Source: Heteronotia binoei
Lineage: Eukaryota
Assembly (NCBI RefSeq): GCF_032191835.1
Contig: NC_083231.1
Coordinates: forward strand, 72,168,001 to 72,232,000
Direction of reading: 5' to 3'
Length of the DNA stretch: 64,000 nt
Below, one piece after another: positions 3,362 to 63,805 of the stretch. Below the pieces are notes generated by a model. That model did not search any database and was not told the origin of the DNA. It worked only from the letters and a program-made list of their open reading frames with translations. The position numbers and the translations under genes are program-made. The stretch's first letter is position 1; every line of letters starts with the position of its first letter.

Positions 3362-4170
3362 CAGAATCTACTTCCCTTCAGCTTCATTGGATGCCTTTGA
3401 GTTCTAGAATTTTGGAAGAAGAAAAAGTTCTCTTTGTCAACTCTCTCCATCCCATTAATAACTTTATAAACCTCTGTCATGTACTCCCCATAGTCATCGC
3501 TTTTCTAAACTGAAAAGTCCCTGACTCTCTAGTCTTTCCCCATAGGGAAGGTGCTCCAGCCCCCTAATCATCTTGATTGCTCTCTTCAGTACTTTTTCCA
3601 GCTCTGCAATGGCCTTTTTGAGATATGGTGACCAGAATCAAACACAGTAATCTAAATGAGGCTGTGCCATAGATCTATACAGAGACATCATAATGCCATC
3701 CATTTTCTTTTCAATCCCTTTCCTAATGAGGGTTGCTAGGTCCATTGGGCCAGCAGGTGAGGGATGGGAGTAAGCTTACCAGGAGCAGGGATGGGAGAAG
3801 CCAGAAATAAACTCAACATGCCTTCATCACACAGAAGTGATGTAGGCATATCAGGAATGTTGGGAATGATGCTCTGGTTTGTGGGCAAAACCTCTATAGT
3901 AGAATTAACTTATAACCATAGAATTTTACCCAAAAATTAGAGTGCTGCTGTTGATGTCATTGACATGCCTACATCATTTCCAGTTGACATGGGCACATTG
4001 CATTTATTTCTGGCTTCATGGTTTTTTTTGGGGGGGGAGGGGTAATTCCCTCCAGCAGCTCATCTGGCTGCTGGTCGATAGGCCCAAAACTGAGGGACCC
4101 CTGCTTGCACTGGGAGATTTGGCAACCGTATTCCTAATAATCCCCAGCATAGAGTTTGCCCTTTTCATCT
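3362..4170 (-). mobile_element. CR1 LINE 3' fragment interrupted by a hAT MITE
   Basis: Similar to the CR1 at 15.9-16.3 kb (ctcttcagtactttttccagctctgc..gagatatggtgaccagaa); CR1 sequence resumes at 4131 (ttcctaataatccccagcat). Confidence 0.7.
3728..4130. mobile_element. Non-autonomous hAT element (TAGGGTTGCCA family)
   Basis: Ends gagggttgcta / tggcaaccgta; perfect 8-bp TSD ttcctaat (3720-3727, 4131-4138); internal inverted repeats gaagccagaaataaa / tttatttctggcttc. Confidence 0.85.
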
Positions 4171-15618: not shown

Positions 15619-17451
15619 TAAGAACATAAGAACATAAGAGTAGCCATGTTAGAGCAGGCCAATGGCCCATCCAGTCCAACACTCCGTGTCACACAGTGGC
15701 AAAAAATTTTTATATATACACACACACTGTGGCTAATAGCCACTGATGGACCTCTGCTCCATATTTTTATCTAAACCCCTCTTGAAGCTGGCTATGCTTG
15801 TGGCCGCCACCACCTCCTGTGGCAGTGAATTCCACATGTTAATCACCCTTTGGGTGAAGAAGTACTTCCTTTTATCCATTTTAACCTGTCTGCTCAGCAA
15901 TTTCATCGAATGCCCATGAGTTCTTGTATTGTGAGAAAGGGAGAAAAGTACTTCTTTCTCTACTTTCTCCATACCATGCATTATCTTGAAAACCTCTATC
16001 ATGTCACCCCGCAGTTGACGTTTCTCCAAGCTAAAGAGTCCCAAGCATTTCAACCTTTCTTCATAGGGAAAGTGTTCCAGCCCTTTAATCATTCTAGTTG
16101 CTCTTTTCTGGACTTTCTCCAATGCTATAATATTCTTTTTGAGGTGCGGCGACCAGAACTGCACACAGTATTCCAAATGAGACCGTACCATTGATTTATA
16201 CAGGGGCATTATGATACTGGCAGATTTGTTTTCAATTCCCTTCCTAATAATTCCCAGCATGGCATTGGCCTTTTTTATTGCAAACGCACACTGTCTTGAC
16301 GTTTTCAGTGAGTTATCTACCACGACCCCAAGATCTCTTTCTTGGTCAGTCTCTGCCAGTACCCACCCCATCAACTTGTATTTGTAGCTAGGATTCTTGG
16401 CCCCAATGTGCATTATTTTGCACTTGGCCACATTGAACCGCATCTGCCACGTTGACGCCCACTCTCCCAGCCTCAACAGATCCCTTTGGAGTTCCTCACA
16501 ATCCTCTCTGGTTCTCACCACCATGAACAATTTAGTGTCATCCGCAAACTTGGCCACTTCACTGCTCACTCCCAACTCTAAATCATTTATGAACAAGTTA
16601 AAGAGCATGGGACCCAGTACCGAGCCCTGCGGCACCCCACTGCTTACCATCCTCCACTGCGAAGACTGCCCATTTATACTCACTCTCTGCTTCCTATTAC
16701 TCAGCCAGTTTTTGATCCACAAGAGGACCTGTCCTTTTACTCCATGACTCTCAAGCTTTCTAAGGAGCCTTTGATGAGGAACTTTATCAAAAGCTTTCTG
16801 GAAGTCAAGGTAAACAACATCTATCGGGTCTCCTTTGTCCACATGTTTGTTCACCCCCTCAAAGAAATGTAACAGGTTAGTGAGGCAAGATCTTCCCTTA
16901 CAGAACCCATGCTGAGTCTTCCTCAATAACCCGTGTCCATCAATGTGCCTACTCATTCTGTCCTTGATAATGCTTTCTACCAACTTTCCCGGTATTGAAG
17001 TCAGACTGGCTGGCCTGTAATTTCCCGGATCTTTTCTGGAACCCTTTTTAAAGATGGTGGTGACATTTGCTACCTTCCAGTCCTCAGGAACGGAGGCAGA
17101 TTTCAATGAAAGATTACAGATCTTTTTTAGAAGATCCACAAGTTCAACTTTGAGTTCTTTCAGAACTCCCGGATGTATGCCATTCGGACCCGGTGACTTA
17201 TTAGTTTTTAATTTGTCTATCAGTTGTAGGACCTCCTCTTTTGTCACCTCAATCTGACTCAGGGCTTTCAACACCCCTTCCAAAATTAGTGGTTCTGGGG
17301 CGGGCAAAAAGTTCTCATCTTCCACAGTGAAGACGGAGGCAAAAAATTCATTCAGCTTCTCAGCCATTTCCCTATCCTCCTTCAGTAATCCTTTTACCCC
17401 ATGGTCATCCAAGGGCCCCACTGCCTCCCTGGCTGGTTTCCTACTTCTAAT
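15619..17451 (-). mobile_element. 5'-truncated CR1 LINE with an uninterrupted RT frame (ORF 15733-17526)
   Basis: PGNYRPASLTSIPGK, QHGFCKGRSCLTNL, YLDFQKAFDKVPH, SGVPQGSVLGPMLF, FADD, ERDLGV; 3' tail of (ttcttatg)n octamer repeats typical of CR1. Confidence 0.95.
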
Positions 17452-18744
17452 GTGATGTATTAAATTATGCAAAATTATGCATTGGGACTCAACCCACAGT
17501 AAACTATACACAATAGTACAAACCAAAGTCCCCCAATAATTTATCCAAGTAACTTTGTGAAGCCTTTCATAACAGTGCTACCCTATAGTCTGCACATAAA
17601 AACCCTCTTGAATAATTCAGTTTTGCACTGTTTGTGGAAAACCATGGGAGTGGGAGCTTTCTTGGCTTTCTTAGACAGGCTATTTCACATGGTGGGGCCA
17701 CAGCGGAGATGGCATGTGTGTGGGCAGTTGTTGACTTTGCTCATTTCCAAGTTAATTGAAATATATAATCTAAATGTTTGCACTGATAATTAGCAACCTC
17801 AAGTAGTTATATATAACATTAAGCACTCCATATCAGTACCCAATTCCAGTAAAGCTGGAACCCCAGCTTTAAAGCTTTGTGGTCCAAGCTGTGCATGTTG
17901 TTACGCTGAAGGATATAAATGAGGCAAAGTGATGGGGGAGAGAAAAAGCAAGAAAAGTATAGTTACCTATTTGTTGATGGTCCAGGTGCAGACTCAATCA
18001 CTGAAGAATGGTCTAGGCAAATCATTCAAAAGAGAATATAATGTTGACATTACATGTCATTACATGTCACCACATGCTCAGCCCTACACAAGCAATAGCC
18101 ACTTTGGGGATAGATTCTGGCCTTACTTTTTAAAAAATACGTTCAATTTTTTTATTTTGTTTTAAAAGATATAGAAATAAAAAGGAAAATAAAAAGTAAT
18201 TAGAGAAGTAACAAAATATATACATGTACATAAACACCCCCTTCTACAATTTCAAAACAGCTCATACACTAACAATATCTTCAATCATTATCTTAACAAT
18301 ACAAATCAACTCCAATCTTCAAACACATTGATTTCTTTTAAACACAGTTATTTCCATAAATATTATCAAAATTTTCATCTGCCATTTCTATTTAAACTCA
18401 AAATCAACAGGCACAATCTATTAAAATATAAACATTTTTTCTAAAAGGGGGACACCAATAATTCTGGCCTTATTTTTGACAGGCAAGTAACAAGATATTT
18501 TTCCTTCCTGTCTCAGAAGATGGTGTATGTGTGATTTCAGGACCTAATAACATTTAAATGAGGTAAAGGTTTCTGGATGTGGAGTGGATTTAATCTTAGT
18601 TGCTCATGACAGTCATTTCCAAATGTCATAACTCTGAAAATAGTGGTAGTTAGTCCAAGGATAGAAACCTTGTTGGCTCCAGTTAATGGGATTAACTGGA
18701 CAGTCCTACTTCTGTTGACTCTTCTGCTTCTGCTGTGGTAACAA

Positions 18745-27463: not shown

Positions 27464-27599
27464 NNNNNNNNNNNNNNNNNNNNNNNNNNNNNNNNNNNNN
27501 NNNNNNNNNNNNNNNNNNNNNNNNNNNNNNNNNNNNNNNNNNNNNNNNNNNNNNNNNNNNNNNNNNNNNNNNNNNNNNNNNNNNNNNNNNNNNNNNNNN
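27464..27599. other. Assembly gap (136 N)
   Basis: Run of N. Confidence 1.
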
Positions 27600-28229: not shown

Positions 28230-28905
28230 TAGGGTTGCAAATCCCCAGTTGGGGGCAGGGGATTCTCCTGTTTGGAGGCCCTCCTCCCACTTCAGGGTCA
28301 TCAGAAGGCCAGTCAGGGGAGGAAATGTTTGCTGGGCACTCCATTATTCCCTATGGAGACTGATTCCCATAGAGTATAATGGAGAATAATCCATGGGTAT
28401 CTGGAGCTCTATGGGATTTGTTTGTTGAGGTAGAAGCATCAAATTTACAGCTCACCATCCAGTGCCTCTCCTCAAAACATCCTTCAAGTTTCAAAAAGAG
28501 TGGGCCAAAGAGTCCACTTCTATGAGCCTAAAAAGAAGGTGCCCCATTCTTCATTATTTCCAATGGAGAGAAAGCATTTAAAAGGTGTGCAGTCCTTTTA
28601 AATGTGATGTCCAAACTCCCTTTGGAGTTCAATTATGCTTGTCACAACATTGCTCCTGGCTCTACCCCCAAAGTCCCCAGATATTTTATTTATTTGTTTA
28701 CTTGCTTTAATTGATATGCTGCCCACTCCGCGAGCGGACTCTGGGTGGCTAACAGTCATAATAAAACAATGTAAATACAATTATAAAAGAATAAAACACA
28801 TATAAACAATTTAAAGCTACATTATTAGGTGCTATAAAAAGATTTCATAACAAAGGCGGCTTCTCCAATCTCAATTCTCTTGAATCTCAGTTCTCTTGAA
28901 CCTTA
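28230..28905. mobile_element. Non-autonomous hAT element (inverted relative of 59075) containing an L2-tail insertion (~28685-28860)
   Basis: Left end tagggttgcaa, decayed right end gaacctta; perfect TSD attgaaag (28222-28229, 28906-28913). Confidence 0.8.
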
Positions 28906-30688: not shown

Positions 30689-31604
30689 TCATAGGAGCAG
30701 GACCCGGGCGGCTAACCACTCCAGGCCGCTTGCAAAGTTCTTAGCGTACACCGGATTCCCAGGAAAGAACCCCCTAGCGGATTCCCTGGTTTCGGGGGAA
30801 CTGCAGAGATCCGTGGCTCGGTCAGGATGAAACCTGTCTAGCCTCGTGATCAACTTCCTCCCCATTAGTAACTCAGCAGGGCTTAACCCGGTGACGGGGT
30901 TGGGGGTGATTCTGTTATTGAATAGAAAGGCCGCCAGGCGGTGGTCCCAATCTCCCTGTACAATGCGCCCCAGGGCCTCTTTAATGGTGCGCACCATGCG
31001 CTCTGCTTGGCCGTTGGTGGCTGGATGGAAGGGGGCGGACCGAATGTGCTGTATGAGGTATCTATTCAAGAACTTCTGGAATTCCCGGGAGGTGAAAGCG
31101 GTCCCATTGTCCGTGACGAGGGTATCGGGAATCCCATGTGTGCAAAAGACCCTACGCAAGGCTCTGACTGCCGCCGCAGTGGAGGTTGAAGCTACGAGAA
31201 TAACTTCCAACCACTTGATGCATGCATCTACAAGAATAAAGAATATTTGGCCCTGGTATGGCCCCGCAAAGTCTAGGTGTAACCGGGACAATGGCCTCCT
31301 ATTGAACTCCCAGCGGTGTACAGGGGCACTGGGCGGATCAGGCTGGGACTCTTGGCAGGCACCTTCAAATCCACCCTTCAATCTCTTCGACCATTCCCGG
31401 CCACTATACATAGCTGCATGCCAGGGCCTTCATCCGCACCATTCCCGGATGTGTTTTGTGTAGGGCTTCCAGCACTTGTTTCCGCAATGGGTGGGGGGGA
31501 CCACCACCCTGCTTCCCCAGAGAAGGCACCCCTTGTGCATGGACAGTTCTTCTCTGCATAATGCGTATGCCCTGAATTCTGTGTCTTGTTTGCCGGCGGG
31601 CCAT
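30689..31604 (-). pseudogene. Gypsy integrase remnant (HHCC and DDE core)
   Basis: LHKTHPGMVRMKALA; LHLDFAGP, VTDNGTAFTS, APFHPATNGQAERMV; frameshifted. Confidence 0.9.
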
Positions 31605-41019: not shown

Positions 41020-41766
41020 TGCTTGCATTGATTCCATTGTCTGGTTGGGGGTGAGCTCTGCCCAGGTAAAGTTTCCCAGTGAGTTTGATGTCACTAGCTT
41101 GTTCATGAGCCATTTCATTGACTCTCATAACTGCAGCTGTCTTTTCCGGAGAGGGCACTAGGGAGACCTTTTTTTGGGGGGGGGGGTTTCCATAATTCCA
41201 GAAAGGTAATCTGCCTACAACTTGGATACATTGTAAACAAGCAGGCAGCATGGTAAAGTTCCTTGTGTGTTTTGTGTGTGTAGCTTGCTGGGGGGGGGGC
41301 ACACTATACTCTTTTGAACCTGTACCTGACATTTCCCCAAAAAACATTTTCCTAGCTTGATCTTAGTCCTGTCAGGTTTGCACTGCCACAGTGCGACTGG
41401 TTCTGTTGGGTACACTGCACTGGTTCTGCTGTGAGTTTGATGTCTGTTCTATACACTACTGAACCTCCTGAACCTGCCCTTGTTATTTCCCCAGAAAACA
41501 CTTTCCTGGGAGTACTTTCTTTGTGGGACTGTAACTCATACCCTGTATATCCAATCCACACCAAACCTGGAGAGCAGGTTAAGGAGATTCTCTGAGTTTG
41601 GTGTCTCCAACATGTCAGGGGCCATCCTACCACAGCATGAACGTCATGACATTAACCAGTTCATTTAGCGCAAAAATGTTTGTGATAATTTGTGGTTCAC
41701 AAACAATGCATGCCACGAACCACGAACTAGTCCAAACCACATTTTCCTGGTTTGTGCCCATCCCTA
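41020..41766. mobile_element. Degenerate DNA-transposon-like repeat, related to ~51200-51805
   Basis: 41480-41620 aligns with 51290-51430; both copies end in a gtgcccatcccta-like terminus. Left end not found. Confidence 0.45.
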
Positions 41767-47938: not shown

Positions 47939-49941
47939 ATTTTGTCCTTGGCCTGAAAGTTAGTGGCAGATGAAAGAATATTGTGAAATTATGACCATTC
48001 CTATTACCAACTGTTGGAAGTAACATGTTTGCAGTGACATGACCAACAGCCCTGACATATCCCTGGATATTTGGCTGGGAAACAGCAGTGGAGCTGGGTG
48101 GGAATTCCAAAATGAAGTAGTATAACAAGTCCCTTTAAAAAACACGGAACTTTGCATCAAGTGACTAGACTAATTTACCAAGTACAAGGGGAAACATTCC
48201 CATGTATATTGACTTATCTTTAGGAAAGACTGGAAAGTGAAAATTGCATATTCATAGTTGCAGAGGATTGTCCTAAATGTAGCAATAGGTTTCTGATCTA
48301 TGATGGTTGGGTGGGAGGAAATGAGGGGTTGGACCCACTGTAAATTTTCCTTTGGCAAAATTGAACTTTCCTTCTTCCTCCCAATGCCGCTCACTGACCT
48401 CCACAAAGTGCTGCTCTTAGGGTTCAGGGGACTTGAAGGGAATAGGAATTGGTGGACATTGCCAGTTTAGTCTGGATCCAACCAGATGGCCTGTTGAGTC
48501 TGATATTCAATTGCATCTGTTGTACAAAATCAAACATGCAAAATGACTTATACAGAATAGCAAGCAAGCATTATGATGAATGGTGACCAAAAAAAGTAAG
48601 TAACTATGTGAAGTAGTAAACCACTCAGATCTTTGACTGAGGAGCTCTGAGGTCTGTTTTGGTAGGACAACCTGATCTGAATGACAGTAATAGTGTGGAA
48701 GGGGGAAAGGAGGGGAGCCATGGCACAATCTCACATGTGGAGTGAAATTTAGTGCATTACATTTGTAAGAATAAGGCCAACAAGCTTTAATAACTAATTT
48801 ATAAAAGCCATATGGAACACACAAAATGTGTAAAATCGAACTGGAAAATCAACTAAAAGGAAACTAGAAATATGTGCTAAAACCACATTTAATAAAAGTT
48901 AAAGCATTATTATCTTAAAGGATGTTTTCTCTTTGGCAAACATGCTCTTCAGTTTTTCTGAAGAGTTCCCATAAGTTTTAATGACCAAGTAAGTATTCAT
49001 ATTTCTAATATGTTTTCCTAGGTTAATAACCTGTATGCATAATCAACTACTTCATTTGAAATGCTAACAGGGATCCTTGTTTTACTGATCTCTTTCCATC
49101 ATGTTAAAAATGTTGCGAGTTTTTTCTTGGTTGATATCACTTACTAATTATAACAGTGTGGATGTTTAGAGTTTAGTACAGTATCATGAAGGATTTATCT
49201 GTCAGATTCTCATTCCCTTTTGCTAACCTGTCATTGTACTTTTGTTACCCAAAGAGTCAGTTTCCTATTGGACTAGTGTCTCAGTGCATATAGGAAGAAT
49301 GTTCCCTGGGACTATGCTGGTTTGCCCCCAAAACAATGTCTTGATTGTTGTTTCAGGGATGAACAAAGATCTTGAGAAACCTTGATGAGATTGCTGGGGG
49401 TTGATCTATAGGTGTTAATATTCTTCATGTGATCCTCAAATTCAGAATGGGAGAAACTACTGGGTTGTATGAATAGCATTAAGTATTTCATAACTAGGGT
49501 AGATGGCCAAGGGGAAGCATGACTGGAAGTGGATGAGGTTAATCTCAGGTGAGGTAATGTTTTCTTGGGAGAACCATTGTTTTAAATTATGCATCTCTTT
49601 AGGGTGGGGGTAAGGTCATTAGCTTGTCAGCCTCTATGTTGCACCTACCAAAATACTTTCCCAGACTTGTCTCTGGCCAGCATCCATTTTGGTTGTATCA
49701 GATTCATTTTGGTTTCACTGTTAGGCCAGGCAGTGTCCACCGCTGGCCCACTGCCTGCTCTCCACAGTGATCAGAGGAGTGCCATGACGAGACGTGGCAC
49801 CACTTGCTTCACAAGGGCCCGGGATTCTTCTAAGTTGTTTGAAGAGTGTGCTGGAGGAGGCTTCTCCCCCCCCTCACTTCTGGGCCCTTGTGAAGCAGGT
49901 AGGGCCAAGCCTTGTCCCTCTTCTGATCACATGGGGGGGGA

Positions 49942-51178
49942 TAGGGTTGCCAAGTCCCATTTTTAAAATATCTGGGGACTTTGGGGGTGGAGCCAGGAGA
50001 CTTTGGGGGTGGAGCCAGGAGACACTGGGGTGGAGCTAGGGGGAGGGGGGAAACGGCGCCGGGGAGCGTCGCTGCGCTGCTGTGGCTGCTCCTCCAAGAT
50101 GGGCTCAGGCTGGGCCCATCTCGGAGGAGCAGCTGCCGGGGGGGGGGGGCGTCGCGGCGGCGTCCTGCACTCCGCCTCTGCATTGGAATGGGGGGGTGGA
50201 GGTGGGCCAGGAGCGTGGCGAGCCGTGAGTCCGGGTCTTAGAGGGGCCCGGATTCGCGGCTCGCCATGCTCCTGGCCCGCCTCCACCCTCCCCTTCTCTG
50301 CTTTGGCTGCTCCTCCGAGATGGGCTCAGCCTGGGCCCATCTCGGAGGAGCAGCTGCCGGGGGGGCGGCGCGGCAACGTCGCGTGCTGCGCTCAGCCTCT
50401 GGGTTGGAATGGGGGGGTGGAGGCGGGCCAGGAGCGTGGCGAGCCGCGAGTTCGGGTCCTAGAGGGGCCCAGATTCGCGGCTCGCCATGCTCCTGGCCCG
50501 CCTCCACCCTCCCCTTCTCTGCTTTGGTTGCTCCTCCGAGATGGGCTCAGCCTGGGCCCATCTCGGAGGAGCAGCTGCCGGGGGGCGGCGCGGCAGCGTC
50601 GCGCGCTCCGCTCAGCCTCTGGGTTGGAATGGGGGGGTGGAGGCGGGCCAGGAGCGTGGCGAGCCGCGAGTTCGGGTCCTAGAGGGGCCCGGATTCGCGG
50701 CTCGCCATGCTCCTGGCCCGCCTCCACCCTCCCCTTCTCTGCTTTGGCTGCTCCTCCGAGATGGGCTCAGCCTGGGCCCATCTCGGAGGAGCAGCTGCCG
50801 GGGGGGCGGCGCGGCAACGTCGCGTGCTGCGCTCAGCCTCTGGGTTGGAATGGGGGGGTGGAGGCGGGCCAGGAGCGTGGCGAGCCGCGAGTTCGGGTCC
50901 TAGAGGGGCCCAGATTCGCGGCTCGCCATGCTCCTGGCCCGCCTCCACCCTCCCCTTCTCTGCTTTGGTTGCTCCTCCGAGATGGGCTCAGCCTGGGCCC
51001 ATCTCGGAGGAGCAGCTGCCGGGGAGGGAGGGGGTGGCAGCAGCGCGGCTGCGTCGCCCGCTCTGGGATGGGGTGCCCGCCGTTTCTCCCCTTCCCCCGC
51101 TTCTGTTTTTGGGGGGAGCAGGGGAAGAGGGTGGAAAACCTGGCATCCCCCGCCAGAGCGGGAGGGTTGGGAAGGCTA
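49942..51178. mobile_element. Non-autonomous hAT element carrying a GC-rich hairpin tandem array
   Basis: Left end tagggttgccaag shared with the 59075 copy; right end ttgggaaggcta (59075 copy: ttgggaagccta); perfect TSD ggggggga (49934-49941, 51179-51186). Confidence 0.85.
50085..51024. repeat. CpG-rich tandem array, ~4.25 units of 220/221 bp
   Basis: Unit starts at 50085, 50306, 50527, 50747 and 50968. Confidence 0.97.
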
Positions 51179-52716
51179 GGGGGGGAAGGTGGAGCACAAC
51201 ATGCTGCTGCGCTATGCTGGGGAAGTCCAAATTGTGGCACCCCAAAGAAGGTACCCCCAGGAAAGTGCTTTCTGAGAATGACAGATGGTAATTTCCTCCG
51301 AAAGCATTTTCCTGAGAGTGCCTTCTTTGGAGGGAGCATAACTCAGATCTCATAAATCCAATCCTCTCCAAACTTGGAGGGCAGATAAAGGAGATTCATT
51401 TGGAGATCCCCTCAAATTTAGTGTCTTCAGCTTGCACAGGATTCATTCTATACATTGCTGAACTTCCTGAACCTGTGCCTGTTAAAATTTTGACAGATGC
51501 AGGTGCAGGAGGTTTAGGAGTGTACAGAATAAATCCTTTACAAACTAGATATATCAAAGTTTCAGGGGACCTCTGCAAGATGTTCCTCTTCATGCCTTCC
51601 AAGTTCTGACTCCTCTATTGCGTTGAAGTTTTGTAAACATTTAGAGTGAGTGGAGAAAGTCTGTCTGGAACTGTATCCATTCATGACCACCACAAACTGG
51701 AAAGTTCATGCTGGTTGACTCTCATGAACTTCACTTCATGTACCATGAACTGCCCAAAATTCATTCTGAACTTTAGTTTGTGAGCCAATTCATGCCTATT
51801 CCTAGTTGTAAAATGAATTCTCCCTAGCTGCCACCTGTGTGGGGGGAATAAAAACTGGGTAGAGGCAAACCCACCTGGGAAAAAAATCTAGTGTAAGCCA
51901 GTTGTCTTCATCTCATTCTAACTACTATGAAGCATAATTTACAGATGTAGCAAAATGAAATAGCAGAATTTCAAGGTTTTATGGGATATGCCATATAGAT
52001 TCCAGAGGGGTTATTCTTAATGGTCCTTCATGTAAAAAATCGCTTAGAAATAATAAAAAGCCCACCCGGGAGTAAAGTTCTAGTGCAGCCCTTTGCATGC
52101 TGAGCTAATCTTCAGGTTTCAGTAAATTATTAATGTGAGAGAAATTTGGGGTAAAAAGTAATCTGGGCCATTGCATTGAAATGTCTTCTCCAGTTAAACT
52201 GCATGTTTGTAAAAGCCTATAATGATTGTTTTAAGTGCTTGTATTAACACAGGCAATCATTATAGGCGTTTTCAAACTTGCATTTAAAGTGCATTACAAC
52301 AAAATGGCCCTGATCTATAGTAGTCTCATACAGCTGTTGTTTTATATAACTAGGAAACAAATATTGTAGGGGGACATACATATTCACATCCATATTACAA
52401 GAAAGATGCACATTCTGATGAGAAATGCATTGGCTACTTTGCATAACAATGCAGGTGAAATCTTTATCTGCACACACAGTTTCAATCCAGTAATGGAATT
52501 TACACATGGAAAATTCCATAGGAGTAGTTTAGTTAATCTGCTGCAGCCAAAATAACAGATAATCTTGTTATGCCTTAAAGACTAACAGATTTATTATGGC
52601 ATGGTCTTTCATAAGTCACAATTCACATGGGCAGATACATAAAAATTACATTCAATCAATAGTTTACGCACAAACAGAAAAACAAACATTGCTGTGCAGG
52701 GTGTTATTACAATGAG

Positions 52717-52952: not shown

Positions 52953-53086
52953 NNNNNNNNNNNNNNNNNNNNNNNNNNNNNNNNNNNNNNNNNNNNNNNN
53001 NNNNNNNNNNNNNNNNNNNNNNNNNNNNNNNNNNNNNNNNNNNNNNNNNNNNNNNNNNNNNNNNNNNNNNNNNNNNNNNNNNNNNN
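52953..53086. other. Assembly gap (134 N)
   Basis: Run of N. Confidence 1.
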
Positions 53087-56320: not shown

Positions 56321-57940
56321 GTGGAAGGGCATTTTCCAGCACCTCTGAAAGAGGCTGTGGTCCGCCCTCTATTGAAAAAACCAACGTTAGATCCGGCCGA
56401 ATTGACACACTATCGGCCAGTCTCGAATTTACCCTTTTTGAGTAAACTCATTGAGAGGGCAGTGGTGTTGCAGTTGCAGAGTTTTCTGGAGGATGCTTCC
56501 GTTCTCGACCCCCATCAGTCCGCTTTCTGTCCGGGTCACGGGACGGAGACAGTGCTGGTTGCTTTGATGGATGATCTCCAGCGGCATCTGGATTGAGGCG
56601 GCTCAGCGGTGCTGGTGTTGTTAGACCTATCAGCAGCATTCAATATGGTTGACCACCAGCTGCTGACTTGTCATCTTGCTGATGTGGGGATTCAGGGGTT
56701 GGCCCTACAATGGCTCTCCTCGTTCCTTGATGGTCGGGGACAAAGGGTGGCGATTGGGGGTGAGTTGTCCCAGAGGCACACACTTGATTGTGGGGTGCCC
56801 CAGGGGGCAGTTCTTTCCCCAATGTTGTTTAACATCTACATGCGCCCCCTTGCCCAGATTGCTCAGAGATATGGGCTGTGTTGCCACCAGTACGCTGATG
56901 ACACCCAGCTCTATCTATTCATGGACGTACGGCCTGACTGTGTCCCAGAAAACCTGGACCGGGCATTACAAGCTGTGGCTAGATGGCTCAGGCTGAGTAG
57001 GTTGAAACTAAATCCAGCAAAGACAGAGGTCCTTTGCTTGGGTTGCCGTGGTCTGGGGGGGAAGGGAATTCCCCTTCCAGCTCTTGACGGTGTGCCACTG
57101 ACAGTGGCGCACAGGGTCAGGAGCTTGGGGGGTACTACTTGAGCCCGCCTTAACTATGGAGGCTCAGGTAGCAGCCACTGCTAAGTCCGCATTCTTTCAT
57201 CTTAGGTGGGCGAGGCAGCTGGCTCCCTTCCTGGAGCAGGATGATCTGGCAACAGTGATCCATGCAACGGTCACCTCAAGGTTGGATTACTGTAATGTTC
57301 TCTACATGGGGCTGCCCCTGTGCTGAACCCGGAAGTTGCAGCTAGTGCAGAATGCCGCCGCTCAGCTGTTATTAGGGCTCCCTAGATGGGAGCACATTCA
57401 GCCGGGCCTTTGGGGACTGCATTGGCTGCCAATAATATACCGAGTCCGGTACAAGGTGCTGTTTATTACCTTTAAAGCCCTATATGGCCTAGGACCTGCC
57501 TACCTTAGGGACCATCTCTTCCCATATATCCCCAGAGAGTACTGCGATCTAGCTCTCGAAACCTGCTTATAATCCCCGGGCCAAAGGAGGCCCGGTTGAC
57601 CAGGATAGGGCCTTCTCAATTACAGCCCCTTGCTGGTGGAACCAGTTACCGGAAGAGGTCAGGGCCCTGCAGGATATTGGACAGTTCCGCAGGGCCTGCA
57701 AGACCGTCCTCTTCCGGTTGGCTTATAACTGACCGGTACCGAAACACCAAAATAGTAAGGAAGTCTATAGATAGCACACTGATATGGATATTAATGTTTT
57801 AACTATGTAATTTATTATTGTATTTTAATTCTGAATTTTATTGTTAGAACTTTTATGCTGTGAGCTGTCCTGAGCCCGCTTCGGTGGGGTAGGGCGAGAT
57901 ATAAATCAAATCAAATAAATAAAAATAAAATAAAAAAATA
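56321..57940 (+). mobile_element. 5'-truncated L2 LINE (RT with stops and frameshifts)
   Basis: HYRPVSNLPFLSKLIER, HQSAF.PGHGTETVL, LLDLSAAF..VDH, GVPQGAVLSPMLFNIYM, YADD, LNPAKTE; tail gggcgagatataaat plus an A-rich microsatellite. Confidence 0.92.
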
Positions 57941-59074: not shown

Positions 59075-59909
59075 TAGGGTTGCCAAGTCCAATTCAAGAA
59101 AAATCTGGGACTTTGGGGGCGGAGCCAGGAGACTTTGGGGGGTGGAGCCAGGAGACATTGGGGGTGGAGCCAGGAACAAGGATGTGACAAGCATAATTGA
59201 ACTCCAAGGGAGTTCTGGCCATCACATTTAAAGGGGCAGCACACCTTTTTAAATGCCTTTCTTCCATAGGAAATAATGAAGGATAGGGGCACCATATTTT
59301 GGGGCTCATAGAATTGGACCTCTGGTCCAATCGTTTTGAAACATGGCGGGTATTTTGGGGAGAGGCACTAGATGCTATACTAAAAATTTGGTGCATCTAC
59401 CTCAAAAAATAGCCCCCCAGAGCCTCCAATACCTGCAGATCAATTCCCCATTATTCCCTATGGGAATCATTCTCCATAGGGAATAATAGAGTGCCCAGTA
59501 GACATTTCCCTCCCCCCCATGCTTTCTAAAGCGGGGGGGGGAGGGCCTCCAAACCAGGGAATCCCCTGCCCCCTTCCTCTCTCACAACCACAAATACTTA
59601 CTAGATCTTGTTCCTGCAGAACTTTACTTGCTGTGAAAATGAAAGCAAAAGAAAGGGAGGGGCCGTTCTCCATCGAAACTGTTACTGACCCTTTCCCATG
59701 AAGCCCTTCCTGTTTCCTGTTTCCTGCTCAGTCTTAAAGGCACACATTTTACAAACAGATCAGTTTGCAGTTTTCTAAACCTGCAGGAGCTCTACAACTA
59801 CATGATGACTGTGGGGGTGGGGCTTCCACTGCTGGCCAGCTGGCTGGGGGTGGGGAGAAGCCTGTAAAAACAGGGGCTCCCCCCTGGGACCTGGGGATTG
59901 GGAAGCCTA
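59075..59909. mobile_element. Non-autonomous hAT element, 835 bp
   Basis: Ends tagggttgcca / tgggaagccta; perfect TSD gtcctgga; three subterminal ggggtggagccagga-type repeats. Confidence 0.9.
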
Positions 59910-61796: not shown

Positions 61797-63805
61797 TTTT
61801 TTTAGGTTAAAACAATTTTATTTGGTAACATATGGTAACAAATTATATTTCTTGCATCATTAATAACTTCTTTTATCTATCCCATATATTATTTTCTACC
61901 CACCCCTCCCCCCGTTACTTGACCCCCGCCGGTGTTATTTACTTAAAGTACTAATGTTTAAAGGTACCCTTAACTAATATAAACAAAAATTAATATCCTT
62001 CTTTTTTCTAAGACTTTATCATTATCAAAAATTGTTCAATGTCCTTTTATTTTCCACTCTTTTTCTACATATCTTCTGAACTTTCTCCACTCCATCTTAA
62101 AAACTTCTAAATCATAGTCTCTTAAAATTCTTGTTAATTTGTCCATTTCACTCCATGTCATAACTTTTACAATCCAGTCCCATTTCTCTGGTATTTTTTC
62201 TTGCTTCCATAACTGTGCATATAATGTCCTTGCAGCTGAAAGCAAGTACCAGATTAAAGTTCTATCTTCTTTTGGGAAATTTTCCATTTGTAATCCCAAC
62301 AGAAAAGTCTCTGCAACTTTCTTAAATTCATATCCCAAGATCCTAGAAATTTCTTGTTGAATCATCTGCCAATACTTTTCTGCTCTTTCACAAGTCCACC
62401 ACATATGGTAGAAAGAACCTTCATGTTTTTTACATTTCCAACATCTGTCTGGCATCCTATTATTCATCTTTGCCAATTTCTTAGGAGTCATATACCATCT
62501 ATACATCATTTTAAAACAGTTCTCTTTAATACTATGACACGTCGAAAGCTTCATAGAATTCTTCCACAAATATTCCCAAGTTTCCATCTGTATTTCTTTA
62601 TTTACATTAATTGCCCACTTAATCATTTGATATTTCACTACTTCATCCTCCGTAGACCATTTTAAAAGTAATTTATATAATTTTGAAATTAATTTTTCAT
62701 TGTCTCCAAGCAGAACTTTTTCCATTTCTGTTTGCTCTCTTCTTATTCCTTCAGTTTTAATGTCATTCTCCACCAAGCTTTTTATTTGTTGCATTTGAAA
62801 CCAATCATATTTATTATTCAGCTCTTCAGCAGTTTTCAATTCTATTTTGCCACTTTGTATTTTTACTAGTTGATTTTATGACAACCTCTTTTCTTTACCC
62901 GTCTCAGCTGTTATTTTTATCACTTCGGCTGGCACTATCCATAACGGTTTTCTTTCATCTCCATATTTCTAATATTTCATCCAAGTATTTAGCAAGCTGT
63001 TTCTTATATAATGGTGAGAGAAAAAGCCGTCTATCTTTTTTCCCCCATAATACATATAAGTGTGCCAGCCAAATTTATTTCCATGACCTTCCAACGCTAG
63101 GAGTTTTTTGTTTAACAACATTATCTATTCTTTTATCCATACTAAGCAAACTGCATCATGATATAATTTTAAGTCTGGTAATTGAAATCCACCTCTCTCT
63201 TTTGCATCTGTTAAAATTTTCATTTTAATTCTTGGTTTCTTCCCCGCCCACACAAACGCTGACATTTTCTTTGCCATCTATTAAATTGTTTACTGTCTTT
63301 TACAATTGGAATAGTTTGAAACAAATACATTATTCTTGGTAGAATATTCATGAAGTTTATTCCACTTTAACATATCTTCATCCATTTTACGCCATAGCTT
63401 CTCATAATTATTTTTGAACAAATCAATATTCTTCATTGTTATCTCCACACCCAAATATTTTACCTTGGAGGTAACTTCACAGCCCGTTAGTCTCTGCAAT
63501 TCTTGTTGCTTATTTATTTGCATATTTTTACATAGAAGTTTTGATTTTTCTTTATTAATACAAAGTCCTGCCAACTCCCCATATTCTTGTATTTTGGCTA
63601 ACAACAAAGGTGTGACTTGTATGGGGTTTTCATTTATAAACATTATACCATCTGCAAATGCTCTGTATTTGTAAGTAAATCCTTTTACTTTTAATCCTTC
63701 TATTTCTTTATCTTCTTGAATTTGCATCAGTAATATTTCAAGAGTCATTATAAACAACAGTGGGGAAAGTGGACAACCTTGTCTTGTACCTTTACTAATT
63801 ATCAT
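61797..63805 (-). mobile_element. 5'-truncated L1-clade LINE, same family as 10856-14094
   Basis: GTRQGCPLSPLLF, FADG, VKYLGV, KMMYRWYMTP, CWKCKKHEGSFYHMWWTC; shared 3' UTR end. Confidence 0.93.

Follow-up and report, generated by a model that had tools for sequence, protein, structure and literature searches.

The 1,237-bp segment at positions 49942-51178 of the window (the whole 64-kb stretch of DNA analysed here) is, with a probability that we put at about three in four, a single copy of a non-autonomous hAT (hobo-like) transposon of chimeric make-up, which inserted as a unit with an 8-bp target site duplication (TSD), and whose GC-rich palindromic core was amplified head-to-tail at the DNA level with no dedicated product. 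The element has a GC content of 70% and a CpG observed/expected ratio of 0.65, against figures of 40% and 0.24 over the full window, and its length (1,237 bp; >500), GC content (0.70; >55%), and CpG ratio (0.65; >0.6) all lie within the sequence criteria for a CpG island. It is considerably longer than the canonical copies of its family in the window (~470-520 bp), and it exceeds the few hundred base pairs expected of a miniature element.

Both boundaries are marked by a perfect TSD that can be read directly, with the left copy of GGGGGGGA at 49934-49941 matching exactly the right copy at 51179-51186, directly outside the 3′ end. Over the whole 64 kb, the + strand contains this 8-mer only eight times, and among random position pairs at the element's spacing an exact 8-mer match was found in 0 of 20,000. 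These observations bear out the first-pass annotation, which had proposed a 1237-bp element flanked by a perfect 8-bp TSD, and the 8-bp TSD together with the lack of a coding signal (see below) supports its description there as a non-autonomous hAT-type element. The GGGGGGGA target does not fit the hAT/hobo consensus (nTnnnnAn, or NTRNNYAN for lizard hobo), as it has G at positions 2 and 7; the hAT target consensus is a statistical preference only. We found no paralogous empty site for the element within the window. The element lies 4 nt after a ~164-bp foldback-like sequence (49767-49930), which is low-copy in contigs from related organisms and has arms at 49786-49820 and 49882-49916 (35 nt, 83% complementary), and at 49767-49784 and 49913-49930 (18 nt).

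The 5′ end is that of a very abundant MITE family. The terminus, TAGGGTTGCCAAGTCCC... (49942-49976, + strand), corresponds to the terminal inverted repeat (TIR) of this family and matches a copy at 59075. It is followed at 49977-50040 (+ strand) by three 22-bp subterminal direct repeats (GACTTTGGGGGTGGAGCCAGGA; Tandem Repeats Finder, period 22, 3.0 copies), which are presumed to be a transposase-binding region; the same 22-bp repeat array is also present at 59109-59175. The element's first 99 nt share 88% identity with the 59075 copy, in agreement with the match of the first ~100 bp recorded at first reading, and the 5′ 100 nt are common to the copies at 59075 and 28230-28700. The canonical ~0.5-kb copy at 59075 extends to ~59585 and is missing its 3′-terminal ~20 nt; the second canonical copy (28230 to ~28700) is in reverse orientation, is without the 5′ terminus, and has a single 22-bp repeat. 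The 28230 copy supplies the family's canonical 3′ end, ...GGGGATTTGCAACCCTA, and reveals the 3′ truncation of the 59075 copy.

We aligned contigs from three public runs, representing related organisms A and B, to window positions 49700-51400. The 5′ end, including the 22-bp repeats, reaches a summed contig depth of ~1e5 in RNA-library contigs of organism A. In dozens of contigs from the relatives, and in all three runs, unlike and mutually different flanks of low agreement start at 49941/49942; the 5′ end is therefore present at many insertion sites, and its boundary is exactly where it was first placed. Behind ~50020, the relatives' contigs run into at least two other interiors, one of which, CAAGGTTGTGACAAGCATAATTGAACTCCA, is the core found at 59075.

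The terminal TAGGG of the 5′ end conforms to the YARNG motif of hAT elements, and the terminus is similar to TAGGCTTG, the TIR of Anolis hobo (PMC3014272). When the terminus sequence was looked for in the literature, unrelated primers were the sole matches. The window also contains a separate ~400-bp MITE (3728-4130) with hAT-type termini (GAGGGTTGC.../...GGCAACCGTA; GAGGGTTGCTAGG.../...TTTGGCAACCGTA), flanked by a perfect 8-bp TSD, TTCCTAAT, at 3720-3727 and 4131-4138, which fits nTnnnnAn at positions 2 and 7. This combination of a like terminus and a perfect 8-bp TSD supports the hAT assignment of the terminus type. The hobo families of Anolis carolinensis (hobo-N1..N_AC) have 8-bp TSDs, YARNG termini, and the TIR TAGGCTTGMTC (Novick et al. 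2010; PMC3014272). Our element is similar to these in its 8-bp TSD, its terminus starting TAGG(C/G)TTG, and its lack of coding capacity, although its termini are not identical to hobo_AC (TAGGCTTGMTC) and its TSD departs from NTRNNYAN. The likeness is one of termini and TSD, and a common lineage with the Anolis families is putative.

The 3′ subterminal region and terminus (...GGGAGGGTTGGGAAGGCTA; 51098-51178, + strand) are identified by contig comparison as a lower-copy variant end. Positions 51084-51172 are multicopy in organism A contigs, at a depth ~1/100 of that of the 5′ end, and the longer of these contigs match the 3′ stretch alone, not the GC-rich interior. Contig matches in the relatives end at 51172, 6 nt short of the TSD-defined end. 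We considered whether the 3′ end is a diverged version of the one that is canonical for the 59075 family and rejected this, as 95 of 500 shuffles score equally well. The terminal inverted repeat formed by TAGGGTTGCCAA and TAGCCTTCCCAA is weak, with nine of the 12 positions pairing. The ends as initially described thus stand as TSD-bounded, with a 5′ end of the 59075 family, but the TIR is weak and the 3′ end is not canonical for that family. With the 5′ end of an abundant family, a non-canonical lower-copy 3′ end, and a different interior in place of the usual core, the element is, judged by its sequence, a chimera. In lizard hobo families the ends are common and the centres differ, through inter-element recombination and uptake of extraneous 'filler' DNA (PMC3014272); however, the cargo of the Anolis hobo elements consists of fragments of other transposons, whereas here it is a tandem array of long palindromes.

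This array occupies 50077-51024 (+ strand) and comprises 4.3 units of 221 bp with 95% matches and 72% GC (Tandem Repeats Finder), in close agreement with the ~4.25 tandem CpG-rich units of 220/221 bp counted initially. Together with an alignment of the units, it resolves into unit 1 (50077-50297), unit 2 (50298-50518), unit 3 (50519-50738), unit 4 (50739-50959), and a partial unit 5 (50960-51024), all on the + strand; Tandem Repeats Finder also gives a second solution with a higher-order period of 441 bp. A degenerate continuation of the last unit is present at 51025-51077 (+ strand), in which the linker part can be aligned and the centre of the large palindrome is absent; 51015-51070 aligns to unit positions 55-110 with a score of 35, and none of 300 shuffles is as good. 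The array is bracketed by a 20-nt inverted repeat found by local alignment, with its left arm at 50039-50058 and its right arm at 51078-51097 (+ strand coordinates). The left arm aligns to the reverse complement of the right arm with a score of 30, compared to a shuffle mean of 14.4, and again 0 of 300 shuffles is as good. There is no further occurrence of the 221-bp unit in the rest of the 64-kb window. The earlier idea of a MITE amplifying internal sequence or seeding a satellite was of the right kind, and a tandem array of hairpin-forming GC-rich units is indeed present.

The differences among the units carry a record of how the array grew. Units 2 and 4 are identical, and the 65 nt of unit 5 are identical to the first 65 nt of unit 3; at a 441-bp offset, 286 nt align without a single difference. 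Units 2 and 3 have 97.3% identity, and unit 1 has 88.5-90.6% identity to the remaining units. Because unit 2 equals unit 4 and unit 3 equals unit 5, a 441-bp dimer has either been duplicated very recently or been mis-assembled. We conclude that the array grew in at least two phases, the latest of them very recent, although an assembly error could also have given rise to the identical stretch. In that event the last dimer (50739-51024) would be a spurious duplication of 50298-50583 and the copy number would be partly artefactual, an explanation that draws on the 286 nt of 100% identity at the 441-bp offset and on a unit number known from the assembly alone. However, a diverged partial unit closes the array, which is the pattern of a natural array, and units 1, 2, and 3 are mutually different, so at least three units are real; we regard such an artefact as unlikely. 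Six of the ten transitions between units 1 and 2 are at CpG, and these between-unit CpG transitions suggest decay of the kind seen in methylated DNA.

Each unit consists of a small palindrome whose arms are 24 nt long, a linker of 52 nt that includes a small stem, and a large palindrome whose arms are 53 nt long, such that the palindromes (49 and 111 nt) account for ~72% of the unit. A repeat search places the small palindrome of unit 2 at 50306-50354, with a 1-nt centre, and those of the other units at 50085-50133, 50527-50575, 50747-50795, and 50968-51016. The arms are 92-96% complementary, with a T:G as the sole mismatch in unit 2, and the 20-bp perfect stem recognized at first reading is recovered as the outer 20 bp of the 24-nt arms. 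The large palindrome, located by repeat search and in folds, is at 50407-50517 in unit 2, with a 5-nt loop, and at 50186-50296, 50627-50737, and 50848-50958 in the other units; its arms are 87-89% Watson-Crick complementary, and the mismatches are mostly G:T. This is the large stem previously described as having 50 bp and a 3-nt loop, but the arms are 53 nt, the loop is 5 nt, and the stem is perfect only when G:U pairs are included.

One unit folds as + strand RNA at -197.6 kcal/mol (z -15.5), as - strand RNA at -165.2 kcal/mol (z -13.0), and as single-stranded DNA at -107.1 kcal/mol (z -17). Strong RNA and DNA folds on both strands result from the palindromic nature of the DNA. The stability of the unit folds, the 32 kcal/mol by which the + strand is better than the - strand (owing to 10 of the 12 transition mismatches, which can pair as G:U on the + strand), and the presence of array-like short contigs in RNA libraries of a relative would all be in keeping with a transposon-borne structured-RNA locus, in which + strand hairpins are processed to endo-siRNAs or miRNA-like small RNAs that, for example, silence the element's own family. 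However, any DNA palindrome folds in this way on both strands. The RNA-library contigs, from one relative, are few, low-depth, and neither strand- nor end-resolved, and are no demonstration of transcription. Rfam searches at permissive E-values gave only generic miRNA-precursor models, on both strands as is to be expected from any long palindrome, with 25-69 bits compared to gathering scores of 51-200; the best match, MIR1437, has 69 bits compared to a gathering score of 168, and no Rfam family matches the element at its gathering score. Among the four to five closely related units compared, there are no compensatory double changes in the stems, and all of the differences are one-sided. The element is similar to animal hpRNA and MITE-derived miRNA loci in having long inverted repeats that would form near-perfect hairpins if transcribed, and is unlike them in having no Rfam family at threshold and no sign of conserved pairing among the units compared. 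With both strands folding, sub-threshold Rfam matches on both strands, and no compensatory change, the structured-RNA or endo-siRNA reading put forward in the first-pass annotation is not supported, and we consider it improbable.

The stem mismatches themselves are unevenly distributed. Read on the + strand, the distinct mismatches comprise 10 G:T, two A:C, and one transversion (two-sided binomial p ~0.04, n = 12 transitions). When these are split by eye and post hoc, the CpG-type transitions are symmetric (3:2) and the non-CpG transitions are 7:0 wobble-compatible. Local transcription or replication asymmetry was rejected as a cause, there being no G/T skew in the window outside the element. 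Half of the mismatch events are common to all units, and the G:T bias was thus inherited from the founder unit; a p of ~0.04 on 12 events, half of them from one founder unit, also counts against a small-RNA locus. The bias could stem from selection acting on a single-stranded form of the + strand, or from C-to-T damage that was specific to one strand of a master copy. An account at the level of DNA alone does not predict this + strand bias (10:2), which is the sole observation in favour of a role as RNA, and a weak one. We think it quite improbable that the hairpin cassettes constitute a mobile and strand-specific structured element, with the G:U-tolerant hairpins of transcripts or of single-stranded DNA under selection, perhaps as a source of hpRNA or endo-siRNA regulating the hAT family. 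If this were true, the host or the family itself might regulate a huge hAT family, with expansion of the array tuning the dose.

The element gives no sign of being a new RNA gene, and nothing points to a dedicated RNA or protein product. A Pfam search of 20 ORFs in the window, including the array ORF, yielded matches only to retroelement domains outside the array; the array itself had no match, and no ORF was identified as a hAT transposase. The array has a 450-aa read-through ORF, which covers all three + frames and has no HMMER matches among 1.84 billion representative proteins, and a homologous-protein search with a 138-aa array ORF was without match. An ORF of 450 aa is expected from stop-poor GC-rich DNA. 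Given the absence of a Pfam match and of a protein relative, and a unit period of 221 that is not divisible by three, there is no coding signal.

The unit is also present in related organisms. Exact 31-mers of the unit turned up in three organisms from two studies, in DNA data sets that comprise only 6-18 million letters, and short contigs of organisms A and B are 88-92% identical to the small or the large palindrome, with some joined in other orders or orientations. What was seen of the unit in the relatives were fragments. Because the unit words were caught in such tiny data sets, in which a single-copy locus is not expected, we infer that related genomes contain the hairpin modules as multicopy cassettes. 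In a scan of metagenome contigs, the core of the small palindrome had no exact match.

These observations bear on whether the cargo is host DNA (a CpG island, promoter, or 5′ exon) that was captured in the manner of a Pack-type element and then duplicated, giving rise to a mobile CpG island or promoter. The composition would fit such an origin, with 70% GC and a CpG ratio of 0.65 over 1.2 kb compared to 0.24 for the window, and so would a canonical G-quadruplex motif on the + strand, present once in each of units 2-4 (at 50401, 50621, and 50842). However, each unit, with ~72% of its length in palindromes, does not resemble the DNA of exons or promoters, the modules appear to be multicopy and rearranged in relatives, and there are many CpG transitions between units, as expected of methylated, decaying DNA. 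Moreover, neither of two very large protein collections contains anything like the + frames, and the palindromic parts read nearly alike on the - strand. Protein searches with the 138-aa and 450-aa ORFs found no host-gene homology of the cargo, a result with which capture of a non-coding promoter is compatible. Overall, we find an origin by host capture hard to credit.

A different role for the repeats is suggested by Tetris of Drosophila virilis, a foldback transposon that carries TIR-220 repeats and whose alleles are documented to differ by duplication of a unit (Dias et al. 2014; PMC4079207); the internal repeats of Tetris and Galileo have been proposed to multiply transposase-binding sites (PMC4079207). 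Our element is similar to Tetris in its ~220-bp internal tandem repeats, in a short stretch common to the repeats and the terminal domain, in the change of copy number by single-unit duplication, in ends shared with MITEs, and in a modular, rearranged structure. The Tetris repeats are different in that they sit in long foldback TIRs and seeded kb-size satellite arrays, whereas here there is one central array between short termini, with no satellite array known. By analogy with the description in PMC4079207, the array could multiply transposase-binding-like motifs, and thereby raise, or eventually block, mobilization. The left arm of the large palindrome does contain GGGGGTGGA-(5 nt)-GCCAGGAG, which agrees with the 22-bp subterminal repeat at 17 of 17 nt, interrupted by a 5-nt insertion, but the likeness is marginal, with 21 to 23 of 500 dinucleotide shuffles (~4%) scoring equally well in this G-rich sequence, and GGGGGTGGA and GCCAGGAG are putative transposase-binding sites only. 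We therefore view a binding-site function for the array as very unlikely.

The chimeric hAT transposon that we favour has its closest counterparts in kind among DTC84 of Donax trunculus and pearl/CvA, which are tandem-repeat-containing MITEs (Satovic and Plohl 2013; PMC3879986); in these elements, a palindrome in each repeat has been put forward as a hotspot at which array length changes (PMC3879986). Similarities to them include a short array of core repeats (up to ~5 units), flanks with inverted repeats that act as a 'cassette', and a palindrome in each repeat. They are in different superfamilies, however, with DTC84 having an AA target duplication and our element one of 8 bp, and the palindromes are 12 nt in DTC84 compared to 49 and 111 nt here, in an element that is 1.2 kb and GC-rich. 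Our element has the head-to-tail internal repeats between TIR-bearing flanks, and the lack of coding capacity, of a tandem-repeat-containing MITE. It is best filed with the tandem-repeat-containing non-autonomous DNA transposons, having the 8-bp TSD of hAT elements and multicopy ends, a TIR in part, and a target outside the consensus. The first-pass view that this is not a described family holds for its sequence, but not for its kind (PMC3879986, PMC4079207, PMC3014272).

We propose that the core of a family member was replaced at an earlier time by interrupted gap repair, by template switching, or by recombination with another element (as for lizard hobo; PMC3014272), and that GC-rich palindromic 'hairpin cassette' DNA would in this way have taken the place of the usual family core. 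The palindromic modules may then have expanded head-to-tail by unequal exchange, or by replication slippage or template switching, any of which long palindromes favour, with monomers expanding first and duplication of the 441-bp dimer following; the placing of capture and expansion with respect to insertion is likewise conjectural. A hAT/hobo-type transposase acting in trans would have cut and pasted the non-coding element into the G-rich target, duplicating 8 bp, and a putative autonomous hAT/hobo partner would bear TAGGGTTGCC termini.

Although a single copy alone alters no current view, the element provides a clean, dated snapshot of a transposon interior turning into a tandem repeat, with a monomer array followed by a dimer duplication at zero divergence. 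It is a vertebrate hAT example, with unusually long palindromes, of a phenomenon mostly described in bivalves and Drosophila, and hairpin-cassette hAT elements bear on the birth of satellites, on palindrome-linked genome instability, and on possible small-RNA production.

Transposons are abundant in the window, in which we recognized no host exon. There are runs of N at 27464-27599 (136 nt) and 52953-53086 (134 nt). Among the retroelement remains, reverse-transcriptase (RVT_1) ORFs are present at 15733-17526 (- strand, 597 aa), 56609-57142 (+ strand, 177 aa), and 63290-63805 (- strand, 171 aa), and an ORF of 240 aa with an integrase core domain is at 30689-31411 (- strand). Just downstream of the element there is a palindrome with 35-nt arms (51242-51330); 51289-51398 has 77% identity to 41482-41590, and 51239-51400 is covered by organism A contigs. 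The 51242-51330 region and 41482-41590 are probably another small MITE.
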